Positions 24,001 to 64,000 of a DNA stretch of 64,000 bases are shown in pieces. Each line of letters opens with the position of its first letter. Within the stretch, counting starts at the first letter, position 1. Location: assembly GCA_004431415.1 (NCBI GenBank), contig QPMI01000173.1, positions 62,001 to 126,000 of the forward strand, written 5' to 3'. The notes beneath the pieces are model-generated. The model was not told the origin of the DNA. It searched no databases and worked only from the letters and a program-made list of their open reading frames with translations. The position numbers and the translations under genes are program-made. The stretch comes from Cyanophora paradoxa CCMP329 (Eukaryota > Plantae > Glaucophyta).

Positions 24001-27000
24001 CGCCCGGAAGGCGCTCACGTCGATCGGGTCGCTCGTCGCGATCGGGCAGAGCTGCGTCGCGCTGCACTGCGCACACTCCTCCGAGCCCGCCTGCGCCGCA
24101 AACGTGCCGGGCGGGCTGCGCACGCTCCCCCGTTTGCAGGCGCCCCGCGCCAGCATAGAGCGCGGCGGCTCGCACCACGGCTCGCAGTAGCTCAGGAGCA
24201 TCGATGCGTTCCTGTACGTTCCCTTTGCGCAAGGCTGCGGCGCTTCTCAGCATGCTCGCCGAAGGCGCCGCCTCGTAGCGAAATTCATTGGAGAATTCGA
24301 ATCATAAGCACCTCGCAAAACGTTTGGAGCTCGTCGGACACATGCCCAGTTGGGCATGGCGTGCATCCAACGGCGCCGGCGGCGGAGATTGTGTTGAAGG
24401 CGCACGGCTGGCATGCGAGGGTGCCATCGGGGAGGCTGCTACCGGCGGGGCAAGGCGAGCAGAGTGTGCGGCTCTCGTCAGAGACATGCCCGGCCGGGCA
24501 CTGCTTGCACAACGCGTCTGACGCCGGCAGCGGTAGCAAATGCAATCCTTAGTGCAAGCAAAAACCGATATTCGAGGCGATAGGGCCTCACCGCCGGGGA
24601 CGGAAGTGGTGAGCGCCGGACAAAGGACGCAGAATCCGGCGGCGGGGTACAGGCCCCCCTCGCAATCTTCCGCGTGACCAAGACTTGAGTAATCGGATTT
24701 TCGTGGAGTCAGACCCCCAAATTTGCTTACTTTTGCAGTCAGCGCGGTTCGCCGTCGGCACCTGCCCCGCCGGGCTGCGAAATGACGAATTCAGCGCTGG
24801 CAGTGCGCATGCGCGAGAGGAAGCGAATCGCCTGCAACATTAATATTGATGAGCCGCGATATGAACGAGCCGCACCAGGCCTCACACTCGGCACCTCCCG
24901 GCGACCGCGAGGCGGTGCCAGGACTGCAAGGAATGCAGCTGGTCGAGTTGCTCTCTTTCGGGCGGAAGAACCCCTGTCGAAAGAGAGTCGATAATGATCA
25001 CATATGCGTGGAGCGTTATACACGTATTGACATCCGCAAAGAGGATTTTTCAGCGCGCACCAGCGGGCAGGGCTGGCATGAGCGCCGGTCGGGTGACGAC
25101 GTGTATCCAGCGTCACACGCTTTGCACTCGAATGCGGTGCCAGGGTCCGGTGCGTACGTGTTGGGCGGGCACTGAGCATATGCGTAGCGAAGTCAGCTAT
25201 ATGCAAGCAAAGGAGTCTTTTTATGGGGCGAAGTCACCTTCAAGCAGGCCTGAGAGCCTTCCGGCATGTAGGAGCCTGGGCTGCACGGCACGCAATTGCT
25301 ACCGTCGTCCGCCGCGTAAGAGCCTAGGTCGCAGACGCGACAAACTTGGGAGCCGGCAGGCGCCCAGGTTCCCGCTCGGCAGGGCAGGCACATGTTGGTC
25401 TGAGGGGACTTGTACGAGCCGGGCTGACACGGGTTGCAGCGCGTCCTGGCGGGCACCGCGATCGATATTGGCAACAAGGCGGCGGGCGAACTTCGACGGA
25501 CGGACCGGTCCGAGCTCGAGATTTCCCCCGGGCCGCACTTCGTGCACGCCACCGCGCCCTCGTCGGCAGACATGTGACCCTCGTCACACATCCGGCACGC
25601 GCTCGTGCCGTTGAACTCGAACGTTCCTCGGGCGCACGGGGAGCACGTCACGCGGTCATCGTTGCTTTGCGTTCCCCGCGGGCTGCCCAAGCGAGATTAT
25701 GTATCAGGCGTCTCGGCGACGATGGTGCAAACAGATCTTGCGCACCACGGGTCACACTCGCTGCGCCCCGGGGCGTTCGCAAAAGTCCCGACAGCGCATA
25801 CTCGACATGATGTCATATTGGAGCCACGGAAAGTTCCGCTTGGGCAGGGGTTGCAGCGCTGGCGGGTCTCGTCTGGGATGGTTCCGAGGCCGCTGCTCGA
25901 ACAAATGAATACGATCAACGTATTTGTAAGATCCCATTTCTAGATCTTAAGCTTACGAACCAGCTGATGCAACTTGTCATTCCTAAATGCGGAGCATACG
26001 TATTGCCTGCGTGTGCACAAGAATCAACGCAATTCTTACACAGCGTTTCTATACTTGCGCCACGCACCAATGCAGTCTCGGCATCGCCACTCTTTCTCGT
26101 ACGTGCCGCGCGCGCACGGCACGCACGTCGCTGCATCCGCACTCGGGACCGTTCCCGGCGCGCACACTGTGTAGTTCCGGGATGCCGCGACTGCCGCCGC
26201 TCCCACCGGCACCCGCTGGCACGCGACCATCGGATCGTGGCGATACGTTCCCGCAAGACACGCTGCAGACATGAACAGAGATCAGTTCAACTCTAGAAGG
26301 AAATATAAACCCGTCGTGATCATGGCCAATTAGTTGTAGTCCCGGGCCGCCGGGATCCGGAGGCGCACGGGTGCAGCTCTGGCTGTCGCGGGCTGCTTCG
26401 TATCCCTCGGGACAGGTCGAGCAATTGGCGTGCCCCGGCGTAGACGTGATAGAATTCGGCGGGCACCTGAAAAAAAAGCGGTCAATGGTGTGCGTCGACG
26501 TCGTTTCGCAAGCGCTTCTATAGCTAGCTATAGATAGCGTTTCTGTATCGACCGCGAGACGCACGGTAGGCACAAGTCGCCGAGCTGGTAGCTCCCCGCG
26601 CGGCAGTCGACGCAGTGGGAGCGGATCGGAGACGGCACCTGCCCCTCGGGACACAGCTCGTACGCGGCGAAGCCCTCCCTGGCTGCAGCACGCTCCGGAA
26701 CGGGGGTGCAAATCGACATGCTTGCAGAGCGGTACGTCCCAAATCTGAACGCGATTGGTTGCGATCAGAGTCAAGGGAGGCGATGCTCAAGAGTTTGGGT
26801 TGTAGCGTACGGGCAGGGGTCGCAGGATTGTTGGTCAGCAGAGGCCGCGTAGCCCGCGTCGCACGGGCGGCAGTAGGCGGCCCCGACAGACGAAACGATC
26901 GAGTTCAACGGGCACTGCAGGCAGCTGTCTTCCAGCTGGAACTGACCTGCAAAGGCGGTAAGCGCACTCGTCCAGCAACTGCAAGGAACGGCGGAAAAAT

Positions 27001-30000
27001 GCAAGGTACCGGCGGGGCACGGCACACAGGTCGCCTTGATGCCGTCCGGGACCCATCCGTCGACGCAGGTGGTGTACGCCGCGCTGCCTTCTTGCGCTGC
27101 CGCCCGCTTGGGAACGGGGATGCACGTTGTGTTTGCCTCGCTTCGGTACGTGCCGGTGGGGCAAGGCTGGCATGTCTGAAGATCGGCCGCCGCGATATAA
27201 CCCGGTTGGCATGGCCCGCAAGTCGTTGAGCCGGGCATTGAGGCGACCGTGTTCAGTTCACAGAGCTGGCACTCGTCTCCAGTTTGGCGCATGCCTGGCA
27301 GAACGTCGGATGCTGCAATGGCAAGGATAGGACGAAAGATACGATATCAACATTTCTTACCTGCTGGGCACGCGATACAGTAAGACCGCGTTCCATCGGG
27401 AACATACCCATCTTGGCAAACGCTGTAATTCGCCGAGCCGGCCAGAGCTACGCTTCGGGCAGGGGCTGGTGCGCAGGTTGACATATTTCCATTCCGGTAG
27501 GTGCCCGGAGGACATTCGAGGCAGAGGCGCTGGTCGCTGGAAGCGAATTTCCCATCCGCACATGTCTCACACGCACTTGAGCCTTCGAAAGGTGCGATCG
27601 CGTTCAACCCGCACGGAACGCACTCGCCGGGCCTCCCCAGCTCGGCTGTACCCGCGCGGCAAGCGATGCAGGCCTGCGCGTAATCGCGTTCGAATCAGTG
27701 AGATCTAACATCGAATCTCGCGACAAACAACAGGAAGACGGCTGAGAGATGCGGGAGTACTCGCTCACTCTGCGGTCGGGTTCCGAGATTTCTCCTGTCT
27801 TACAGCGGATGCACCCACGCCCATCGGGCGAAGCGTGATCTGCGGACGTCGACACTCTGAACGCTGCAAAGATGAATAGATAAATACATGAGCCCTCGTA
27901 CCCTCGGGGCAGATAAGGCACACGCTCGCATTGGGGGGGACACCATAGCCAACCATGCACCAGGTGCAGCCGTCCTGCTTGTCGGTAGGAACTTGCCCCT
28001 GTCCGACGCGTGTGGATACGTATACTCTCTAAAGTCTACATTCAGGATCTTGCATAAAGACTCTACCTCTGGGCACGCAAAGCATGGTCCGAAGTGTTTG
28101 GATGGGGACCACAGGCTGCTTGGGCACCGCTCGCAGGGACGGTCCCGCGCAACTTGGTGGAAGCCTGCTTGGCTGCACAGATGGAACGCGGTATACATCA
28201 GCGAGCGTGCTCTCACGGATTCATGTTAACGTTAACGACCTCGAGGCCGCTGCACATCGATATCGATCTCAAAGTTCAATTCGATTTACCAAGCCGTGCA
28301 GCCTTCGTGCGTGTCGTCCGCAACCATGCCGGGGTCACTGCATTTGCGAAAGACATAAATAAACATAATCGCAAAAGCGTTCGATCAATGTCGATAACAG
28401 TGTTTCGGGGAATTCCGACTCTAAATCTTACGAACCAGTCAATGCAGCTCGACATTCCGATCGATGGCGCGTATGTGTTCCCTAATGCCATTTAATATTA
28501 AATATTAATTTTCAACAGATCGAAGAGGGGGAGCGATCCTTGAATGCAGAAATTGCGCACCAATGCAGTCTCGGCATCGCCACTCTTTCTCGTACGTGCC
28601 GCGCGCGCACGGCACGCACGTCGCTGCATCCGCACTCGGGACCGTTCCCGGCGCGCACACTGTGTAGTTCCGGGATGCCGCGACTGCCGCCGCTCCCACC
28701 GGCACCCGCTGGCACGCGACCATCGGATCGTGGCGATACGTTCCCGCAAGACACGCTGCAGACATGAACAGAGATCAGTTCAACTCTAGAAGGAAATATA
28801 AACCCGTCGTGATCATGGCCAATTAGTTGTAGTCCCGGGCCGCCGGGATCCGGAGGCGCACGGGTGCAGCTCTGGCTGTCGCGGGCTGCTTCGTATCCCT
28901 CGGGACAGGTCGAGCAATTGGCGTGCCCCGGCGTAGACGTGATAGAATTCGGCGGGCACCTGAAAAAAAAGCGGTCAATGGTGTGCGTCGACGTCGTTTC
29001 GCAAGCGCTTCTATAGCTAGCTATAGATAGCGTTTCTGTATCGACCGCGAGACGCACGGTAGGCACAAGTCGCCGAGCTGGTAGCTCCCCGCGCGGCAGT
29101 CGACGCAGTGGGAGCGGATCGGAGACGGCACCTGCCCCTCGGGACACAGCTCGTACGCGGCGGAGCCCTCCCTGGCTGCAGCACGCTCCGGAACGGGGGT
29201 GCAAATCGACATGCTTGCAGAGCGGTACGTCCCAAATCTGAACGCGATTGGTTGCGATCAGAGTCAAGGGAGGCGATGCTCAAGAGTTTGGGTTGTAGCG
29301 TACGGGCAGGGGTCGCAGGATTGTTGGTCAGCAGAGGCCGCGTAGCCCGCGTCGCACGGGCGGCAGTAGGCGGCCCCGACAGACGAAACGATCGAGTTCA
29401 ACGGGCACTGCAGGCAGCTGTCTTCCAGCTGGAACTGACCTGCAAAGGCGGTAAGCGCACTCGTCCAGCAACTGCAAGGAACGGCGGAAAAATGCAAGGT
29501 ACCGGCGGGGCACGGCACACAGGTCGCCTTGATGCCGTCCGGGACCCATCCGTCGACGCAGGTGGTGTACGCCGCGCTGCCTTCTTGCGCTGCCGCCCGC
29601 TTGGGAACGGGGATGCACGTTGTGTTTGCCTCGCTTCGGTACGTGCCGGTGGGGCAAGGCTGGCATGTCTGAAGATCAGCAGAGGCAACGTAGCCCGGAG
29701 CGCAGGGTGTGCAGATCGCTGCTCCAGGGGTCGAGGATATCGTGTTGAGAGGGCACGGTTGACAGTCATCGCCAGCTTGAAAGGTTCCTGAGAGGCTCGC
29801 GCCGTTGGCATGGCATTAATGAAGGTGCGAGCCGAACAGAGGGTCGCACCAGCGGAGCAGGGAGCACAGAAAGCCCGAGCTCCGTCAGGCACCTGCCCAG
29901 CAGTGCAGAAAGTGAAGTGGGCAGATCCAATGGGAGCTGCGGCCCTAGGCGGAACTGCGAGGCACGCCGGTGCGTCGCCGCTTCGGTTGGTGCCTGCGCA

Positions 30001-33000
30001 TGCCGTATGAATGTATATGGGCATGCCGTATCAGAAATCGGCTCATTATAAATGCGGCAGATTCCTATTTTAAATACATACACGCGTTCTCACCGGCGGG
30101 GCATTCGAAGCAGAGGCGCTGGTCGGCCGAGGAGAACTTGCCGTCACCGCACGGCACGCAGGCGGTGGCGTTCTCGAACGGGGCGACCTGGTTGGCCCCG
30201 CACGGCACGCAGTCTCCCGGTCGCCCCGACTCCGCCGTCCCAGGCCGGCACGGCAGGCACGCCTGCGCACGCGTCAGAACAAGACGCGCACGACAGAAAG
30301 CTGCAGTGCGGGCGCGCCTTGCGGTCTGGCAGGGAGTAGAATCCCGGTCCGCATCGAACGCAGCCTTCTCCATCCGGCGAGGCGTAGTCTGCGCCACGTA
30401 AGCGCGACCTCGCGCTATAGCTTCAGCTGTACAAACGGTGCTGGCGGCAGGCACCTTCTTCGCAGGGCACGCAGACGGACTCATTTGCTGGAACGCCATA
30501 CCCCGAGCGGCACCTGGCGAATTAAAATATCTCAGGGAAAGCAATTCCCAACGGGAGGGCGCGGGGCTGCGGACCACTGGCACTTGTCCTGCTTGTCTGA
30601 CGCCACCTGTCCCTGCTCGCAAATTTCGAAAATCGGTCAGACATCAAGCTAAGCGCATTTTCGACTTTTAATGTTTCAATTAATATAAGGATTCGTGCTC
30701 AGAAAGGAGCAGGTGCTTCTGCTTCGTCTGTCGCACCAGCGGACAGGAGAGGCAGGGCCCGAATCGGCCTGGGAGCGACCAAAGGCCAGGGTCACAGGGC
30801 TCGCATGGACCGTGAAGTACCGGTTGATGCCATCCTGCAGGGCTGCTGTGCGTTAAGAGATGTGATCTGAAATGTGTGTCGTATCCGAACAATGAAAGCT
30901 TAAGTCATCACCAAATTGAGCAGGCAGTCAGGTCGCGCGTTGGAGAAGACCCGTTCGGGCCTGTGGAGGAGGATCAATGTACACGTCAATTGAGACGCAG
31001 TTCGGCGTGCGGGATGAATTGTTTGCGCTCACAGAACAGGCAGTCGTCAAGAAGGCCCCCGGGGCTGAACTTGTTTGGAGGGCACGAGATGCACTGGAGC
31101 GGCTCTCGCTTGAGGAAAGTACCCGGAAAGCTGCGAAAAAGAAGTCGACCTCTGTGAGTTTTGCAGGAAACGCAGATCTAGAGGCGCTGCAGTATTAATG
31201 GAACGCCAACAGAAAGCCCACCAGGGCACGCATGGGAAAGTCCATTTTGCCTGCGGCACCGGGCGTGGGCGCAGGCGGATCGGAACATATACAGATACAT
31301 TATAGTGTATATTACATTTGTCTACAGATGCACCGACGGCGTGAAAAGGTTGCTGTCGCACGGCTGGCAGCGGTCGCCTGCGTTCAAAGAGAACGTGTGC
31401 TGAGGGCAGTCTGTGCGGCCGTACAGAAACAGTCAAATTGTTTTAGAGTCGAGAAGAGCAAAATTATTTGCGGGCGGGGTTGGGACCATAGCATGAATCG
31501 GCGCCCAGGCCTGAGAAGGTCCCGGCCTCGCAGACGGCGCACTCCGTGCTGCCCGCCTGCGAGAACGTGCCGTTGGGGCAGAGGGGCGCGTCCGTGTCCA
31601 GGAGCAAGCCCGGCTCGCTGGAGTAGCGGCCTGCGAGGGCGCGGACTCTCCGATAAGTCGCGTGGCGGACCCTCGAGCTCGAGCCGTTGCAGCGGCCGGC
31701 ACCCACGCACCGGCGGGGAGCGGAGTGCACAGATCGGCGATCGCGACCGAGCGGTTGAAGACAGCAGCCTGCAGCGGGGCCACCAACGTTAACGTACACG
31801 TTGTTGCGTGCAGTGTGAGGACCCGGGATGATTCGGGGAATCACTAGCCTCTCGCGAGATGGCCTATTGGTAGAACTGCCGCCTTGACACCCCTTAGTCG
31901 TTGGTTCGACTCCGGCTGGGTCCGGGTCGCAACGCGTCCATAACATGGGGGCTGCTAACGGACCTGGTTCGACTCCCGACGAGGGATAGACCGGGCTTCG
32001 AATCCCACGCGGGGCGCTAGGAAGCGCTGGCTGAGGGCCGCTGCATCGCGGTACCCCGATAAGCCCGGCACCTGCATCGGTGGCCGCCGAAGAGCCTAGA
32101 AACTGCGCGCACGGAAAAAAGCGGCAGTTGCGGCTGTGTGAAGTGGGTGTCACGTGCGGCATGTGACCGAGGTTGAGATCGCGAGTTGTGAGGTGAAATG
32201 CAGCAATGGAACCGCACGGAAGGATCTCGGGGTCGAGATCACCGTGGCGGGGGGGATGTTGCGTGCAGTGTGAGGACCCGGGATGATTCGGGGAATCACT
32301 AGCCTCTCGCGAGATGGCCTATTGGTAGAACTGCCGCCTTGACACCCCTTAGTCGTTGGTTCGACTCCGGCTGGGTCCGGGTCGCAACGCGTCCATAACA
32401 ACGTAGTCCGCTATCTAATTTTATAAGAAGGATTCTGGGCCCGGTACCTCCCAGTTCCAGCGCGACCCAGGGGGGCAGCCCGTCTGGAGCTTGATGACGT
32501 AGGCGGGATCGCTCACGACGAATACAACCTGCGAATCCGAAGCGCGAAAGTCAAAGGTTGAAGACGTTATTGCTACCCATTTTCTCCAAACACGAATCAC
32601 CGCACCCAGGAGAGCTCGGCAAAGGGCAGCGACGGGTCCCCCTCGAACATGCGCCCGCTCGAGAAGTCGTCGACGGTGGAGGCTGACAGGACGTTCGCGG
32701 GGAAGCTGGCCACCACGAGGTCCACGCGCACGCCCGCCGCGCCGAGCTCGAAGGCGGCCCCGTCGACGCCGCGGAGGCGCAGAAGCCGCGAGCCCGGGGC
32801 GCGCTCGGCCGCCCGCTTCATGCGGCGGCTGTGCACGTAACGCGGACGCGTCTCGCGGTCCGACGCGAACGTGAAGACGCGCGTGTTCGTCTGCGTATGC
32901 AGCTCCTGCGCCACGCTGCGCATGAGCGAGCAGGGGCGCCGTTAGTTCATGCGGCCGGGCGCGATCGTTCAATCGAGAAGGTACACTCGAAAAAACTCGA

Positions 33001-36000
33001 AGCAAGCCGGTAACAACATCTAGATTATCTGCACTCACAAGAGGGTGCCGTCCTTGTAGACGGCAGTCGCGACGGAGGTCCAGGCGGCTCGCGTCCCCTT
33101 CCACGCTCCCTCGCCGTAGATCCGCACCTCGCCGTCGATGACGGTGCCGGCGAGTCCGCTCTGGTACGCGTTCGCCTTGCGCACGCGCACGACGCGGTCG
33201 CCGGTGACGTAAAACGCGTAGCGGCCGTCGGGCGGGTCGACCCAGCGGCCCTCGAGATACCCGTATCCGGGTCCGGCGTGCAGCGGGCGCTCGTTCTGGA
33301 TGATCCAGTGGTCGGCCAGCGCGACGACTTCGGTGCGCAACACGCGCGGCGGCGTGTGCGTGAAGACCGCGGTGCGGTACGTCGCCGGCGCGGGGAGCGA
33401 CGCGTTGTGGAGGCGGATGCCGGTGGGCGCCTCGGAGAAGGCGGCCGCGTCGACGCGCCACGTGAAGAGGGCGACGACGTGCGCGACGCTGCGGGCGCCG
33501 CAGATGCCGGAGACGAGCGGGGCGGGGCAGGCGGCGAGGGAGGCGTTGGGGAAGAACGGGATGCGGACGAGGGCGTGGTAGAGGAGCGGGCCGCCGGCCT
33601 CGACGCGCCCGTCCGCTGCAATGGCCTGCAGCGAGGCGCCCGGCGGGAACGCGTCCGCGAAGAATGCACCGCCCTCCTGCGGCCACGGCACCGACTTGTA
33701 GACGCCGCCGGCGGCCGCACCATAGCCGGCGGGGGCGATCGAAGCGAGGTCGAAGGCGAGGAGGGCGACGCCGGTCGGCAGCGAGCAGGCCTTGATGAGG
33801 GGCAGGACGGAGCTCGAGGGCCCGCCGTCGCCGCCGAGCGCCGCAAACGAGCCGAAGAAGGCGACGCCGCGGGACCAGAAGGAGGCGTAGCGGAGCTCCT
33901 GGAGGAGCAGCGCCTCGAAGGGGGCGGCGGAGGGGTACGCGCGCCGCACGTCGGCAGCCGTCTCGCCGCCCTCGAAGGACCGCTCCGACGGTTCCGCGTC
34001 GAAGAAGTCGAGACAGTTCGTCGCCCCTGAGGCAGGCGGCTCATGATCAGCGACCCCGCCAAGACAACGGTACAAGGGTGTTCAGCAGTTTTTTGCGCGC
34101 CGCGAAATTTCAAATTAAGAAACACTGCATTTTAAAAACATTATGAGCGTGCATACGATTATAATTTTTTATTGCAGATCTAGGGAGATTCTATATAGCT
34201 AGTTTTACGCTCATGGAATCTAGGTTTACAATTCCGCGCAAAAACGTGCGCGAAATTCGCTTGAATTTCGCGAATGCGGCAAATACTACACAGACGGGCG
34301 CAAATAATACGTTTACGCGCGCACCGAAAAAGTAATGCTGTCCGAAGGCAACTGGCGAGTCCGCGCCGGGGTTCGACCACGTGAAGCTCGTCAGTTCGGG
34401 CTGCTGTGTAGTTAGTAGACGCCCCGAGAAGAGCGAGCTGCGGTACTGTGCAGGCCGATCGGACCTGCAACCGGAAGTTGCGCGCTCGGAGTTCGGCCAG
34501 GGTTGCGTTGCTCCCCGTCGGCTGCGCATGCCGCGCCAGCGGCTTCGGTCACAGCCATGGCCCCGAAATCAAAGCCCCGCGGGCCGATCGCGAGCGCACG
34601 GCGGGTGCGAAGAGGTGGAAGGTGCCAAGCATGCCGGCCCAGCTGTACGCCTCGGTCGGGCTCGCCGACGCGATCCCCGAGACGGCCTCGTAGAAGGTCC
34701 GCTCTGCAGTGTCGATCGAGGTGCTTCTGGCTGGTTTCTGGCGGCGAGTGCTGGCGCACCGTACGCGGCGTAGAGGTGGCGGAAGTCGTGCGAGAAGTCG
34801 CCCGCCCGCCTCATGAAGTCGTAGGGCGCGGCGCCCTGGCAGAGTCCCGCCGGCCAGCTTCGTATGGGACCGTAGGGGACGGGCGTGCAGCCACTGTAAA
34901 CGTACGCCATCCAGCGCTGGGCGGCGTAGGAGTAGCAGCCGAAGCCGGCGCAGGAGGCAGGCGGGCGCAGAACGTCGGCGACGGCCGCGCCGACGAGATC
35001 GGCGGCGCCCGCAAAGGCCTCCGCGGACCACGGCCAGTCGCTCTGGAAGGCGGTGAGGTTGGCCGGGCTGAAGCGCGCGTCCGGGTCCTTCGCCGGCCAC
35101 TGCGCATGCGCCCCCGTGCGCGTAAGCGACCGATCGCAACAGCGTGTCCAATTTATAATTTATATAATATAGGAACTGAGCATAACGCTCGCATTGCTGG
35201 ATCGTGCGAGGGAGGCACGCGCACGGGGCTCATTGAAGTGTAGGCGAACTCCGTCGGCTTCGCGTCGCCAAGCACCTGGCGATATCGATTCGAATTAAGA
35301 TCCAGATGTCAATATCAGTACCTAGATTCAATTAAAGGAATGTGCAGCAGGCACCTGGGAGAGGCTCATCACAAAGCTGCAGCGATTGCTATCCAAGTCG
35401 AAGTCTGTGGCATTCGGGACGCGTCGCGATCAGAGGCCGGCCGCCCCTCGATCAGGCGCGCTGAGGTTTTGAGGCAGACCGCAGTAGGTGTAGTCGTCCT
35501 TGCTCCGCGTGATGAGCCCGAGGCGGTGCGCGGCCGGCCGCTGGCCCACCAGGTAGTTCGCCACCTTCGCGGCGAAGACTATCTGCACGCTCTCCTCCGA
35601 TTCCACGGCTTGCCCTGCAGCGCAGCGCAGTCGTCTGTCGAAGAACGGTGCAAAGATCAGAAAAATAAGCAGAAGTACCTACACGCCAGAAGGCGTTGCT
35701 GGCGCCCGTGTTGCCGGACGGCATGAGTGCGCTCTGCGCAGCGATGGAGTTGCCCTGCGCAGATGTGTCGGTGCCGAAAGCATATGCATGTAGAGAGGAT
35801 AAGGCCATGTCTGGAAGCACCGCAGGAATGGTGACATTCGTGGATGTAGACGGCAGCGACGACGGTCCTGACGCCTGCCGCCTGGCCCTCACGGAGCAAT
35901 TCACCGTGTACTGCCCCCCGTACGAGAGCTCGACGGTCACCGAGATCGGCGCGCCGGCGGCGTCGGCGTCCGAAACGGACAAAGAGCCGACGTAGGGCCC

Positions 36001-47113: not shown

Positions 47114-50100
47114 ATGGAAGCGATGTTCACATTCGCCGCCCTCGCGCCGCGGGCAGGTCCGCCGAACGCCCATCCACGTGCGCGCCGTTTCTCACACTTC
47201 TCGCTCGCTCTCCGGCAGGCACAGCTAGCAGGCCTCCAAAGATGCTATGCGATGACGCGTGCATCGCTCAAGGCAGCCAACGCGCGTCGGTTCCGACGCC
47301 GCGCGCAGCAGCAGTCTCAGCACCCGAGAAGCAGTTCTTCGGGACAAGCGTGCGGACAGCATATGCATTGCAGCGGACGAGGCTCGGCTTCCCTCCACGT
47401 GCCGCCGCGGCGCACGCGTCCCCCGCCCCTCCGGCCGCGACAAACAAGAGCGACGCGAAGGTGGCTCGCCCCCGCCGCGCCGGCCGCGCACGCCGCGCCG
47501 GCCGGCCGCCGATTCGAGCGCGGCTGCAGGGCGGGAAGCGCGCTGCGTCGCAGGCGGCGAACTCCTCGTCGGGCGGCGGCGCGCCCTCCGAGAAGACCGT
47601 CACGGCATTCGTCTACCGCCTGAGCGACGCGGTCCGCGGCCGACCCGCAGCTCAGCCCCGCGCTGCGCCCCCCGTGCCGACCGGCGCGCGCGCCCCCGCA
47701 GTGCTCCGCGGGGCCCTCGAAAGAGCAGGCGAAGCGCTTCGGGCTCGTCCTGGCCGAAGCGAGAGAGCAGTCGATCGACCCGAGGCGCGCGCCGCGCCGC
47801 GCCGACCGCGCCGCGCGCTGAGCGCGCCGCGCCGCCGCAGCGCGCTGATTGCGCGGACGATGGGCCTCCTGAAGGGCGGCAACAAAGCGCGCGCCATGCG
47901 CGTCCTCGCCGCCCGCGCCGCTGAAGTCGAGGAGCCCCTCACCACCGCCGCGTACCAGTGCGCTGCCGCCCCGCGCCCCTCCGCCCCCGCCGGCCCGCCG
48001 CCGACGCGCGCCCCGCCTCGCCCCGCAGGCAGCTCGTGGAGGGGTACGCCGCCGGGCCGCTGCATCAAATGCGCCGCCGCGACACCCTGATGCCCGCCCG
48101 TCCGCTCCGCAGGGCCGTCCTGGGCAAGGACAGCAAGAGCGCCGCTCACTGGCTCGAGGCGTGCCCGTACCCCCCTTCGCCCCCGCCGCCCGCCCCGCCG
48201 CCGACGTATCCCCAGGAGCTCGCCTTTCGCGGCGGCTTGGTACCCCGCATCCCAACGGTGAACGCGGTCGTGGACCTCGTGCGCCCGTACCCCCCGGGCC
48301 CCTTCCCTCCCCAAAGCTCGCCGACGGGTCGCAGATGATGCGGCGGGGGGAGGCGGCGGCGGCGGCCGGCCTGCTCGAGCGGCTCTGGGACAAGGGCCTC
48401 AAGCGGCGCGCCCCGCCCCCGGCCGCCGCCGCCCCGCGCCCCGCCCGATCCCGCGCCGAGCCGAGGCGCCGCCGCGCAGGGACCCCTCGACCTTCGAGAC
48501 CATGGCGACCGCGTGCGCGCGCTCGCGCTCCCCGGCGCCCCCGTGCGCTCGTCGGAGTCTCACGCCGCTGCCGCGCCAGGTGCGTGGCGCGGGGCTGGCC
48601 GGAGGAGGCGCTGGCGTGCGCCCGCGAGATGATCGCCGCCTCGGCTGCCCTCGAGGCCCGCAACCCGAGGCGCGCCCCCGTGCGCGCCAACAAGGTCCGA
48701 GGGGCGCGGGGCGCGGGGCCACGGCTGCGGGGTGAGGAGGTGGCGGGGCGGGGGCGGCAGGTGCTGCGGCTGCTGGTGGGGGCGGGGGCCCGGAAGGAGG
48801 CGGCGGCCCTCTTCGCGGACATGCGCGCCCCCAGCTGCCACTTCAAGGCCCGCCCCGCCCCCCCGCCCGCCCCCTCCTCTCCGCCATCCTAGATGAGAGA
48901 GAGTGTGTGAAGGTGGCCGGGGCGGCCTTGGGGAAGGCTGGGCCTCGGCTCACCCCCGGGCAGCCGGACGCGGCGACGTACGACGCGATGGCGCGGGACG
49001 CCGTCGCCGCCCGCGAGTTCGGCACCGCCGTCGGCCACGCCGCCCAGGCCCGCCCCGCCCGCCCCGCCCGTTCCCACACGTCCCCATTCCCCGCCCTTCC
49101 CCCCCCCCTCTTTCCTCCCCCCCCCCCCCCCCCCCGCTCTTTTCGGCGCCGACGGGGCGGGCTCGCGCACGCTGCAGGCGCGGGCGGAGGGGATCGACTT
49201 CGGCGCCTTCCGCCTCAACGCCATCGTCAAGGCGCCCCTACCCCCTTCTTCTCCCCCCCCCCGCTGAGGGGCGGCGGGGGTGGCAGGAGCTGATCGCGGG
49301 GGGCGACCTGGAGGGGGCCGGCGCGCTCGTCTCCGCCATGGCCGCCTGGCCCGTGCGCCCCGCCCAGCCCCCCTGCCCGCCCCCCGAGGCCCTAGCCCCT
49401 CCCCGCCCGGCCCCACCCCCTCCCTCCCCCAGGAGGTCGGGACGACGGGGGTCACCTGGATCCAGTACATCAACGCCCTCGTCGTCGCCGGCAAGGTGCG
49501 GGGCGAGAGGGGCGGCACGCTTGCGCGGGGGACCCGCCCCGCCCGCCGGGGCCGTTGCGCCCCGTCTTCGGAGGGGGGAAGGGAGGGGGTGACGAGGGCC
49601 GGGGCCGGCTGGTGAGCGCGGCTGACGGGCGCTGCGGGGCGGGCAGCTGGAGGAGGCGGCCGAAGCCTTCGCCAAGGCCCGCCCCAAGGCGAGCCGCCCC
49701 CGCGCGCCCCCTCCCCGGCGCCCCCGCTCCGGCGCCTCACCCCGCCCCCCTCTTGCCCGGCAGCTGCTGGCGCCGTCGGACGCGGCGGAGCTCGCCTCCC
49801 TCTACAACATCGCCGTCAAGGCCCGTCTCCCCGCCCCCCGCCCTCCCACTCCCCGTGCCTCAGAGCAGCAACAAGAACACCCCGCCGCTTAGTCGACGAT
49901 CTAGGAGGAGGGGGGCCAACGGGGTCTGGCTCGTGACGGCCGCGTGGGCGGGCGCAGGGGGCGGCGGCGGGGCGGATGTTCAACCGGGTGCGGGGGCTGG
50001 TGGAGGAGATGCGGGGGGACGGGGTGCGCCCCGACGCGGCGACGTACGGCCTCTGGATGGACGCCCTCGTCGCCGAGGGCCGCCTCTCCGAGGTGCCCCC

Positions 50101-51915
50101 CGCCCCCCGCCCTCGTCCTCGCCGCCCTCGTCGTCCACCGCCGGCAGCGCCGCGCGGCACCACCGCGAGATCCCGCAGCGCCCCCTAGCCTCTCCTTGGG
50201 GCCCCAGGGTCTCTCATAGGGGACTGCGGAATCGGGGTGCCCCTCCCTTGGTGCGGCGCGGTCTCTGAGCGGGGGGCGCAGGCGATCAGCGTGTTCGACG
50301 AGGCGCGGCGGGCGCTGCCCGAGGGGACGCCCATGTCCGGCATCTGGAACATCGTCCTCAAGGGCTTCCTCGCCCTCGGCCAGGCCCGCCCCCCCGCCCC
50401 CCGTCCCCGAGCCGGCCCGAGGGGGCGCGCTCCGAGCGGGCGGGCGCAGGTGGACGACGGGCGGCGCTGGCTCGCGACGATGCGCGCCGAGGGCGTCGCC
50501 CCGACGGTGCCGGCCCCCGCCCGCCCCCGCCCCGCCCCAGCCGCCCCGCCCGGGGGCGAGCGGGCGCGCAGTGCGGTCGTTCGCGTCGGTGGCGGCGGCG
50601 CTGGCGGCGGCGGGGCGCGTCCCCGAGGCCCGCCTCGTCATCGACGTCCGCCGCCCCGCCCCCGCTGCCCCGCCCCGCCCCCAGCCGCCCCACTCCGCCC
50701 CGACCCCGCGCGCAGGAGGCGGCGGCGGCGGGGGCGGCGGACCGCCGGCTCTACGCCTCCTTCCTCACCGTGCGCCCGCCCCGCCCGCCCCGCCCGATGT
50801 CTTCAATAGCGAAAACGATCCCCTGCAACAAACCAACGCGCGCGTGCATACCGCTCGCGGTTCTGGTCCCGTCCATCGCCCGCTAGAGAAAGAACCCGAG
50901 CGCCTTTCCCGCCCCAACCCCCCCCCCCCCCCCCCCCCCCCCCCGCCTCGTCGCACGGCATGGATCGTCGCTCGGCTCGCTCGCCGACGCGGGCGGGCGC
51001 GCTGGCGCAGACGCTGGTGCGGGGCCGGAGCTTCGGGGCGGCGTGGGAGCTCCTCGAGGCCCTCGAGCGCCCCGACTCGGCCGTGGGGCCCGACGCGTGC
51101 GCCGGGGGGGCGGGCGGGCAGCGGGCGCCCTCCTCCGCTCCCCGGGCTCACGCGGGGCGGGGGCGGGGGCGGGGCAGGGGCATGTACCACACCATGCTCG
51201 TCTCCCTCTGCGCCGCCCGCCGCCTCAAGCCCGTGCGCCTCCAGCCCCCTCCACCCCCTCCCCTCCCCTCCCCCTCCCCCCCCCGCCCGCACCCATCCGC
51301 CTTGGGTGCGCTCTGAGCCCCTTGGTTTGCCTGCGGCAGGCGCGGGAGCTCTTCTACCGGGCGGCCGGCCGCGGCGTCCTCCTCGACCGCGCCTCCCACG
51401 CCGTCCGCCCCCGCCCCGCCCCGCCCCGCGAGCTCGAGGCCGCTCACGCGGAGACGTGCCTCGGCCGGCAGGCGCTCGCGCGGGCGCTGAGGAAGGCCGG
51501 CCAGGCGGACGAGGCCGCCGAGTGGGAGGCGCGCGAGGCTCCCCCTAGATCCCCCTCCCGCCATCCCGCGAGCACTGGCGCTCACCTGAGCGCCGCAGGA
51601 GCGCGCAAAGACGGCGCCGGAGCCGGAGCCGCGGGGTCGGCCTGGCGCCCGCGGCCGCCCCCAGCCGAGGCCCCAAGCGCAGGTGCGAGGCACCTCCCCG
51701 GCCCCGCGCCGGCCTGCCCTCTCGCCCCGCTCAGCGGCTTGCTCGCTTGCGCGGGCCCCGCAGGCCACGGGAGGAATCCGAAGGCGCCCCCGTCGCCCTC
51801 GTCTCCGAGGCCGCCCCGCGCCCGCCGGCCGTCGGCCTCGCCCGCGGTCCGCCCCCCGCCCCCCGCGCCGCCCTCCTCGCCGCTTCTTGCTGACGGGCGC
51901 GCCCCTCCTCCTTAG
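47114..51915 (+). CDS. Pentatricopeptide-repeat (PPR) protein, probably plastid-targeted; 3' end approximate
   Basis: Repeated PPR-like motifs: KPDAATYDAM, GVTWIQYINALVVAGKLEEA, LVEEMRGDGVRPDAATYGLWMDALVAEGRLSEA, IWNIVLKGFLALGQVDDG, MRAEGVAPTVRSFAS, MYHTMLVSLCAARRL. N-terminus MEAMFTFAALAPRA...KQFFGTSV is transit-peptide-like. Confidence 0.88.
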
Positions 51916-52620
51916 GCCCGGTCGCGGAAGAACAGCGGCCCGCGCCCCGCCGCCGCCGCCGCCGCCCCGAAGGCGTGATCGCACTCGCCGGCTCGACCCG
52001 TGGGCATGTTGTGAGCTGCATGTGTATCCACGGCCCCTCGAGCCCGCGGGCTCCCCATTGGACGTACCTGTCGAGAATTTCTTTTAGACGCAGTTGACCT
52101 CTCGTACTCCTCCAAGACACAGTCCCTAGACACCTTTCTTTTTCCTGAGTCCGGTCTCTATCGATGGTCGATGGTCCGGAATGATGCAGGCAGATGCATT
52201 CTCGCGCGTGATGCATTCCGGAGATCAGACGAAATATTTAGGGCCGCATGCAGCGTAGCTTCCGCCTTCACCAAGTCACCCCCGGGCGGCGAGAGCACGA
52301 GCTCCGAATTCGGAACTCCGGGATCCGCTAAAGACTAGACGTAGCGTAAGGAACTGGCCCTCACTATGCCTCCGGGGCTTCACAGGCCCCACCCCTCAGG
52401 TCCCCTTTTTAATTTGCACCTCGCGGGCACTGTCGAGGGCTCTCAGACTCCCGAGACTCTTGAGCTCATGTGCATCAAGACCTTACCCGCGCACTCAAAT
52501 ACCTCAGGGCCTCACGCTTCCCAGGGACATGAATTGCAATTGATATTTGAAGCGGGGCTTGACAGCGGCTGGCAGCGGGGCCCGGCTCGATCGGGGCAGC
52601 GCTTACGCCCTGGGTGCAGG

Positions 52621-62054: not shown

Positions 62055-64000
62055 CTAGTAGCCATCCGTCTCGAAGAAGACGTGGTAGCTGCGGAGGGCG
62101 GGGAGGAGGATCCCCTGCGAGACCCGCGGGTTCTGCGTACCCCCGGCCCCGCCGACGCATGAGCCGCGGAGGTCGCGCCGAAAGGGTGGGCTGGGCGCGC
62201 GCGCGCGCGCCTGGTGCGTGAAAAGGAGGTGGAGCCACTCGCCGTAGTCCTGCTCCGCCACGAAGACCTGCCGCCGCCGCCCGGCCGCCCAGTCAGAGGC
62301 AGGCGGGGCGGGCCCGGGGCGGGGCGGGGCGGGGCGCGCCTTGCCCTCCTCGTCGAGGATCTCGAAGCCGAGGGCGCCGGCGAGCTCGGGGGCGGTGACG
62401 CGGTACATGGTGCCCCGCTCCTCCTCCACCGCGGCCCCCGCGTCCCCGTGGGGCACGTGCGCGGGGAGGCGCAGGGGCAGGGCCTCGGTGCCGCAGTCGC
62501 GGCAGGCGAAGGCGAGGAGGGCGGCGAAGGCGCCGCGGCCGCCGTCCCTCCGCAGCTCCGCGTCGCTGCACGTGAACTCCTTCACCTGCGCCCCGCCCCA
62601 CGCCCCTCGGCCCCGGCCCCGCCCGCTCTGGAGGGGCGCCCGGGCGGGTTGCGCACGCTGGTGGCGGTGGGGGCCGGCAGGACGCGGGGCGAGCCGCCGG
62701 GCGAGGGCGGCACGCCGCCTCCGGGCGGCCGCTCCAGCCGGACCTGTCGCGGCCCGCCGGTCTCGAAGGGGGCGCGCGGGAGCGCGGGCTGGGGTACGGC
62801 GCACGGAGAGGAAGGCGACCGGGTGGTTCGCAGCGTCCACAGCGACGTACCTGAGCGCGCAACCGTCGGCCGGCGGGCCAGGGCGGTACAGGGCGGGAGC
62901 TCACGCGTGGGGGCTCTCGACGGGGACCCACTGCTGCCAGTACCCGTCGCTGTCGCGAACGAAGGGACCTGCGGCGGGCGCGGGAGGATCCCGCTCGGGG
63001 GGCGCACGGGGCGGGGCGGGGGCGGGGCGGCGGGGAGGCACCGTTGAAGCGGCGGGAGTAGGAGGCGTGGATGGAGCGGACGCCGTCGAGCAGCGCGCGG
63101 TCGGCGAAGTCCATCTTGCGCGCCACGAGCTCCAGCGCTGCTCCCCCGCGCCCCCGCGCTCTCAGCCGCTTGGAGGGCCGGCGGGCGGCGCCGCACGCAC
63201 GGTGGGCGGGCGGCGGGGCGGCGGCGGCGAGGCGGGTCATGACGAACTGGCGCGGGACGGCGCGGAAGCCCTCCCTGGCGTAGAAGGGCGCTGTGGCGGC
63301 CGCGCGTCGGGAGCGGCGCGGCGGGCGCGGCGCGGCGGCGGGGGGCAGGGGCACAGGGGCACACCGGCGGCGCCCGTGTGGAGCGATACGAGTCCGACGT
63401 GCTTGTGGGCCTGCGCGAGGCGGGCGCGTCGGCGGGCAGCGGGCGGGCCCGGGGCGGGCCCGGGAGGGGACGGGCCCGGGACGGGGCGGGGGGGGGGAAC
63501 GACGGACGAGGTACTTGATGGCGTCGTGGAGGACGGCGCGGGCGAGGCCCTTGCTCCGCATCGACGGGTCCGTGGACACTTCGCCGATGCCGCCGACGTC
63601 CACCACCTTGCCGCGCAAGTAGCATTTCCGGCGGAAGACGCGCTGCGGAGCGGGAACGAGAGGTGAGCTCGAGCCGAGGCGTCGGGGCCGGGATCCGCGC
63701 ACCACGGTGGAGACGATTGCGCCGTCAACCAGCGCGACGCGGATGCCGTTCAAATCCTTCCACGGATCCAGGTACAAGTCTGGCGCGCGTCAGCGTCAGT
63801 ACCTCGGCCCAGGACGAAACTGTTCGCTAAGGGCGCGCACGATTCGCGAAGTACTGCCGGGGAGGCCTCCGCCCCACGTCCTTGAAAACTGCCGGAGGCT
63901 AAGCAGACCCGCGACGGCGAACCGCGTACGTGTCGTGCGACGCACCGCCAGCCACAAAGTCGAGCCATCGCTCGATCTCGTCTTCTTTGAGGCCCCTGAT
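62055..64000 (-). CDS. GNAT-family N-acetyltransferase (Eis-like N-terminal domain); 5' end runs off the window
   Basis: IRGLKEDEIERWLDFVA...YFANHLYLDPW...IRVALVDGAIVSTV...VGGIGEVSTDPSMRSKGLARAVL (acetyl-CoA motif A)...VSLH...PFYAREGF. Stop at 62055. Confidence 0.88.

Follow-up and report, generated by a model that had tools for sequence, protein, structure and literature searches.

A 599-bp element at positions 31802-32400 of a 64-kb stretch of the Cyanophora paradoxa CCMP329 genome (contig QPMI01000173.1, positions 62,001 to 126,000, forward strand; the whole of this stretch is referred to here as the window) is a terminal-repeat retrotransposon in miniature (TRIM), a non-autonomous element bounded by two long terminal repeats (LTRs); it is structurally complete and very young. 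It belongs to a family of about 20 near-identical copies in this alga, an estimate that comes from read depth and from the flanks attached to the element rather than from retrieved copies. That the element is a TRIM whose LTRs contain a tRNA-derived module is, in our view, very probable. The best explanation for the features taken together, and one that we consider likely, is a recently inserted TRIM driven via tRNA-type boxes, a design known from the Helenus/TRIMp3 elements. Actual use of the LTR boxes by RNA polymerase III (Pol III) is a more tentative proposal read from the sequence, and we put it forward as a possibility that falls somewhat short of probable.

The anatomy of the element, all of it on the plus strand, is straightforward. 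The two LTRs are direct repeats of 144 nt each (31802-31945 and 32257-32400) that are 100% identical and start 455 nt apart; the direct repeat is confined to the LTRs, with no extension past their ends. Their termini are TG..CA, with TGTT at the start and AACA at the end forming a terminal inverted repeat. The motif ACGT stands at 31798-31801 and again at 32401-32404, and the bases beyond these differ, such that the target site duplication (TSD) is exactly 4 bp, an agreement with a chance probability of about 1/256. Abutting the 5' LTR at 31946 is TGGGGGCTGCT, a TGG-type putative primer-binding site (PBS); in its longer form, TGGGGGCTGCTAACGG (31946-31961), the first 8 nt equal a tRNA-Pro-type PBS. 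On the other side of the interior, GGCGGGGGGGA (32246-32256) abuts the 3' LTR and is a polypurine tract (PPT), with uninterrupted purines from 32249 to 32256. Because LTRs, PBS, PPT, and a 4-bp TSD together constitute the full anatomy of a TRIM, we assign the element to this class. The 311-bp interior (31946-32256) is too short for gag or pol and is noncoding: the open reading frames (ORFs) that cross the element match no Pfam family, a search of 5.8 billion proteins returned no homologue of them, and an exact look-up of an internal 40-amino-acid ORF returned nothing on record. The first-pass annotation had described identical TG..CA LTRs, the ACGT duplication, a PPT, and an absence of coding capacity, and reading of the sequence, repeat comparison, and ORF searches all agree with that description. 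The identity of the LTRs (0 differences in 144 bp) by itself sets only a loose bound on age.

To estimate how many copies the genome carries, we compared the k-mer depth of the collapsed contig representing the element interior with that of single-copy flank contigs in two independent DNA sequencing runs. The summed depth is not itself a copy number, and we take the ratio of interior to neighbor as a fair estimate. In run X1 (2024), the flank contig spanning 30300-31829 has a depth of 66.9 and the interior contig spanning 31916-32285, which matches without differences, has a depth of 1391.9, a ratio of 20.8; in run X13 (2012), the same flank has a depth of 33.6 and the interior contig (31917-32240, again without differences) 713.9, a ratio of 21.2. 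No alternative letter with a share of at least 10% is seen in the reads at any position across 31802-32400, and the near-identity of some 20 copies therefore indicates recent amplification. Contigs attach unlike sequences to the element both past 32400/32401 and before 31800, with others in runs X15 and X17, and the mutual agreement of the three X1 contigs that continue behind 32401 is only 0.57. The earlier suggestion of a recently active family is thus sustained by a roughly 21-fold k-mer depth in two runs, by different flanks, and by the lack of common variants.

The single copy in the window, where blastn with a word size of 7 finds no second one, could be explained without mobility, by a duplication of local origin or an error of assembly that happens to resemble an LTR element, and so could the failure of public searches to find any other copy. 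An exact 22-mer from the LTR has 0 matches in JGI metagenome contigs, and a protein search with the 120-codon open frame of the element, meant to pick up spurious gene predictions on further copies, returned no match. We nonetheless consider this very improbable, given the TG..CA ends, PBS, PPT, and exact 4-bp duplication, the 21-fold interior depth in two independent runs from 2012 and 2024, and the other flanks that are joined to the LTR ends. Single-copy contigs span both junctions of this copy in X1 and in X13, such that the insertion is present in both runs, and an empty-site form of the locus was seen in neither. What does count against a mobile, promoter-driven family is that the searches recovered no individual further copy with its TSD, no solo LTR, and no partner element; moreover, the copies are too similar to reveal selection on the boxes described below.

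Each LTR contains an A box and a B box of the tRNA type. The A box, TGGCCTATTGG, lies at 31860-31870 in the 5' LTR and at 32315-32325 in the 3' LTR, and the B box, GGTTCGACTCC, at 31903-31913 and 32358-32368, with a spacing of 43 nt; in a standard tRNA the spacing from A to B box is 44 nt. The B-box pattern GGTTCRANNCC occurs three times on the two strands of the window, with 1.21 expected, and all three matches are inside the element. Outside the element, over the remaining 127 kb counted on both strands, the A-box pattern TRGCNNANTGG is found only twice, and a looser form of it, TRGCY-N3-5-YGG, 26 times. By a rough calculation, a 144-nt LTR would contain both boxes at tRNA spacing by chance with a probability of about 1e-6. 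The B box is embedded in a T-arm (31900-31916; GTTGG/TTCGACT/CCGGC) that is paired, including two G-U pairs, and these motif counts and this reading confirm the initial description of A and B boxes at tRNA spacing, together with a paired T-arm, in each LTR.

When the first T of the A box is numbered as tRNA position 8, position 1 falls at 31853, and the tRNA-sized module of the 5' LTR extends from 31853 to 31925. With this numbering, the module keeps T8, G10, A14, G18, G19, A21, T33, G53, T54, T55, C56, A58, and C61. The other stems are decayed, and by reading form only 2 of 7 pairs in the acceptor, 2 of 4 in the D stem, and 1 of 5 in the anticodon stem. Aligned along its length with 23 E. coli tRNAs, the module is closest to tRNA-Val(GAC), with 48 of 70 aligned positions identical, including CCTTGACA and 16 of 17 positions of the T-arm block. 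The end-to-end alignment score of 12 compares with a null 95% point of 11 and with a median of 10 between E. coli tRNAs of different isotypes. The Val score is tied with those of Thr, Pro, and Lys, and we rejected the Val(GAC) assignment on that ground; a blastn search of the module against E. coli genomes returned nothing, the database being too large for so short a query. From these comparisons the module appears to be generically tRNA-derived, without an assignable isotype. The Val-type anticodon loop proposed at the outset stands in part, since TTGACAC is present at 31884-31890 with an unpaired stem, and falls in part, since the Val(GAC) identity is shared equally with three other isotypes.

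The GAC triplet at the anticodon position and the 16/17 T-arm identity are also what would be expected if the LTR module were a working tRNA-Val(GAC) gene spread by the element. That the acceptor, D, and anticodon stems are unpaired, that neither ARAGORN nor Rfam calls a tRNA, and that Val scores no better than Thr, Pro, or Lys make this extremely improbable. The same failures of recognition also weigh on the proposal of a tRNA-type promoter. ARAGORN makes no call at default settings and reports the module only at 70% thresholds, at which the window yields 372 hits; the Rfam tRNA model has no match in scans of 1201, 229, and 83 nt; and shuffled versions of the module region fold as well as the region itself (z +0.74). 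Within the Rfam clan, tRNA-Sec scores best but reaches only 15.3 bits, where the cut-off is 47; the matches to tRNA-Sec, Plastid-ycf2, and sR38 are all at chance level.

Further structure in and around the module was less readily accepted. The first-pass annotation had proposed an acceptor-like helix whose 5' strand is displaced by an insert with mini-hairpins. The 8-bp complementarity between GGACCCGG (31819-31826) and CTGGGTCC (31916-31923) is indeed present, although folding gives it no support, and 31819-31826 has an equally good alternative pairing with 31922-31928. As it lies upstream of a type-2 start site, this helix would also be outside an RNA begun in the 5' LTR. Given the z value of +0.74, the rival pairings, and the position upstream of the predicted start, we rejected both the displaced acceptor helix and the mini-hairpins. 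A separate complementarity links TGCCGCCTTGACACCCCTT (31877-31895), the stretch at the anticodon position, to 32141-32161, at approximately 17 of 21 positions with two gaps (score 23, against a null 95% point of 21); it could be long-range RNA pairing or chance. Two additional T-loop-like motifs are found in the leader that follows the PBS. One, within TGGTTCGACTCC, has 12 nt identical to the B-box/T-loop segment of the LTR and places a second exact copy of GGTTCGACTCC at 31966-31976; the other, GGGCTTCGAATCCC (31993-32006), was found by motif search and is degenerate. To judge from the motifs themselves, these could be extra sites for TFIIIC, contacts for the primer tRNA, or debris.

If the boxes are used, we envisage that TFIIIC would bind A and B boxes together and that Pol III would start at about 31845-31850, approximately 45 nt into the 5' LTR. 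Because there is no internal T-run terminator, transcription would read through the interior and the whole of the 3' LTR into the flank, where the first TTTT, and hence the nearest possible Pol III terminator, lies at 32419-32422 on the plus strand, 19 nt past the element. The resulting RNA would be about 580 nt long, and its terminal redundancy would comprise LTR positions from about 45 to 144. In the cycle of LTR elements, synthesis begins from a tRNA annealed to the PBS, the minus-strand strong-stop DNA is transferred by means of the terminal redundancy, plus-strand synthesis is primed at the PPT, and integrase generates the target duplication, here of 4 bp. For the Cyanophora element, priming would be by a tRNA with a 3' end in ..GCCCCCA, strand transfer to an internal repeat should be feasible as it is in read-through retroviral RNAs, and reverse transcription and integration would be carried out by the proteins of an autonomous LTR retrotransposon partner that makes 4-bp duplications. 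The missing terminator is a difficulty for this scheme, as each copy would have to rely on its flank. The plus strand of the element contains no TTT at all, which the first-pass annotation had correctly observed and had taken as a sign of Pol III read-through. As such a sign we reject it, because this absence is ordinary in DNA so rich in G+C: shuffling of the nonredundant 455 nt gives a probability of 0.15 for the lack of TTT, 19% of like-sized stretches of the window lack it too, and absence of TTTT is the rule (57-82%).

Sequencing runs that are presumed, and not established, to be of RNA, X15 and X17 among them, provide weak but compatible evidence of transcription, although their contigs cannot reveal start sites. 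Six such runs contain 0.29-0.30 of the sampled words, approximately the share that the element has of the searched stretch. In X15, the element has a depth of 75 and the flanks of this locus are not covered. Also missing from X15 is the repeat at 32784-32896, which has a depth of about 8-fold in DNA, and this run is therefore not thin DNA. One X15 contig leads from an LTR end across the interior and then the entire 3' LTR with no branch at the LTR start, and a 1182-nt flank contig continues out of an LTR end. This pattern fits initiation inside the LTR followed by read-through, and names no polymerase. On the opposite side, depths in X17 are proportional to DNA copy number, and X17 may be thin DNA.

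An ordinary TRIM, driven by Pol II or by read-through from the host, could present many of the same features if the tRNA-like piece were a passenger, the fossil of a tRNA, a SINE (short interspersed element), or a primer-tRNA copy, with no role as a promoter. Such a fossil could well be as decayed as the module is and as invisible to tRNA finders, would need no internal terminator, and would be no more than incidental to a family in which one related LTR has a different middle segment; the presumed-RNA contigs that link LTR ends to long flank contigs are also what host read-through would produce. We consider this explanation unlikely, if appreciable, for three reasons. The part of the tRNA that survives is exactly the promoter part, namely the two boxes with all of their invariant nucleotides and with the spacing between them, in a module with decayed stems. 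By reading, the 144-bp LTR contains neither a TATA nor a known poly(A) signal. Lastly, the X15 graph is unbranched at the LTR start, such that entry of transcripts from upstream flanks is not evident. A recently inserted TRIM driven via its tRNA-type boxes remains the reading that we prefer.

The related LTR with a different middle is seen in X15 as a contig of 307 nt (depth 108.7, compared with 75 for the family) that shares LTR positions 14-57 and 116-144 with the element. Where the element has the 58 nt of 31859-31916, precisely the segment that spans A box to T-arm, this contig has 173 different letters, and it has an 18-nt insert after TGTTGCGTGCA, near the LTR start. A weakly anchored contig in X1 has 26 letters in place of 32277-32346. 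Since related LTRs with a different middle exist, the boxes are not universal among relatives, and the 307-nt variant counts as a further point against the reading that we prefer. The variants fit the idea of Kojima that a tRNA-derived piece was inserted into the LTR of a TRIM (PMC10886601). A bolder synthesis is that C. paradoxa harbors an active, Pol III-driven LTR family in which the tRNA-type promoter is an exchangeable cassette in shared LTRs (58 nt in one form and 173 nt in the other), in which the T-loop/B-box motifs of the leader add TFIIIC sites or primer-tRNA contacts, and which represents an independent, fourth-lineage origin of TRIMp3. We regard this as speculative and doubtful in its full form. 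If true, it would provide a culturable system for LTR-type reverse transcription of a Pol III transcript that lacks its own terminator.

Pfam scans of ORFs neighboring the element gave nothing firm. To the left, 31467-31796 (minus strand) reads as a Cys-rich repeat (CxxGTFS..) with subthreshold Ephrin_rec_like and TNFR-like matches, and 28512-29267 and 26049-26774 (minus strand) have identical weak cEGF matches and may be duplicated exons. The element may be an antisense insertion in a large gene that encodes a Cys-rich repeat protein on the minus strand; none of the RNA-like runs covers the Cys-rich locus. To the right are a further frame with a high G+C content at third codon positions (GC3) at 32600-32941 (minus strand) and a frame of 348 codons at 33038-34081 (minus strand; GC3 0.92). 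The latter has no Pfam domain, but has five paralogues that are 48-68% identical and all from one EukProt proteome, with ids such as tig00000654_g2812.t1, a style that belongs to the 2019 C. paradoxa assembly (PMC6704402); a look-up of paralogue P0001 returned nothing on record. The frame looks like a member of a lineage-specific gene family. Extra, diverged contigs align to 32784-32896, 33204-33324, and 33547-33659. Farther away, 62293-63777 (minus strand) has a borderline match to the GNAT acetyltransferase domain PF13527 (24.9 bits, with a cut-off of 25), and at 48001-52000 the G+C content is 79-80%, well in excess of the window mean, and many long open frames overlap there on both strands.

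TRIMs with Pol III promoters were recognized as a class only in 2024, and transcription evidence exists for Cassandra alone. With a young family of about 20 copies in a glaucophyte that is single-celled and can be cultured, the class would reach into a deep branch of the Archaeplastida; such a family would support the repeated origin of the class and would permit direct tests of whether tRNA-type boxes drive the RNA of an LTR element. Elements of this kind also scatter tRNA-like and TFIIIC-binding motifs throughout a genome, where they can mislead both tRNA and repeat annotation. The 2019 assembly of C. paradoxa comprises 712 contigs and 99.94 Mb at 67.6% G+C, and published repeat analyses of the species consist of RepeatModeler libraries only (PMC6704402).

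Among known systems, retrozymes are ruled out, as Rfam scans identify no hammerhead or other ribozyme family. Like the tRNA-derived SINEs (SINE2), the element has a tRNA-derived segment in which A and B boxes are found, and it would terminate its transcripts at T runs in the flank and depend on an autonomous partner. SINEs, however, are copied at a nick by the machinery of LINEs (long interspersed elements) and lack LTRs, a PBS, and a PPT; the LTRs, PBS, and PPT of this element rule out an assignment to SINE2. Cassandra of plants is a nonautonomous LTR element with an internal Pol III promoter, from a small RNA gene, in its LTRs, as is predicted here. The Cassandra promoter is, however, of the 5S type (type 1) and not of the tRNA type, and Cassandra has its own terminator, giving an 18-bp R region, where this element has none. 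With no 5S match in Rfam scans at E values up to 10, Cassandra is ruled out as well.

The closest parallel is Helenus, which Kojima (Biology 13:119, 2024) grouped with Cassandra and Ajax as TRIMp3 (PMC10886601), and the precedent that the first-pass annotation had named is real. Both are TRIMs, and they have in common a length under 1 kb, a pair of short LTRs, a PPT, a TSD of 4-6 bp, and a PBS, which is a putative one in the Cyanophora element. Helenus elements range from 311 to 1263 bp, a range that includes the 599 bp of this element, and have a TSD of 4 bp in animal families, as here, and of 5 bp in fungal and plant families (PMC10886601). Their LTRs keep TRGCY..YGG and GGTTC in pieces that are unlikely to be working tRNAs (PMC10886601); correspondingly, each Cyanophora LTR has a tRNA-derived piece with an A box (TGGCC..TGG at 31860) and a B box (GGTTC) that is unlikely to be a working tRNA. 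Pol III use is stated to be unproven for Helenus also (PMC10886601). The differences are that the tRNA piece of the Cyanophora element is more decayed than most and is not recognized as a tRNA by ARAGORN or Rfam, that its leader has two further T-loop motifs, and that its host is a glaucophyte alga. We note that tRNAscan-SE was used to type the tRNA pieces of Helenus, the defining screen being sequence similarity (PMC10886601). The hosts in Table 1 and the supplements of that study are confined to fungi, six animal phyla, and Selaginella, and algae, glaucophytes included, are missing (PMC10886601); the literature that we searched contains no later report of Helenus-type elements from algae. 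The suggested novelty thus holds for the algal lineage and not for the kind of element, which already has a name. Multiple origins have been argued for Helenus (PMC10886601), and the Cyanophora family probably arose independently of the known ones. Judged by its sequence, it would represent a new family of the already known Helenus kind, in a lineage in which that kind had been undescribed.

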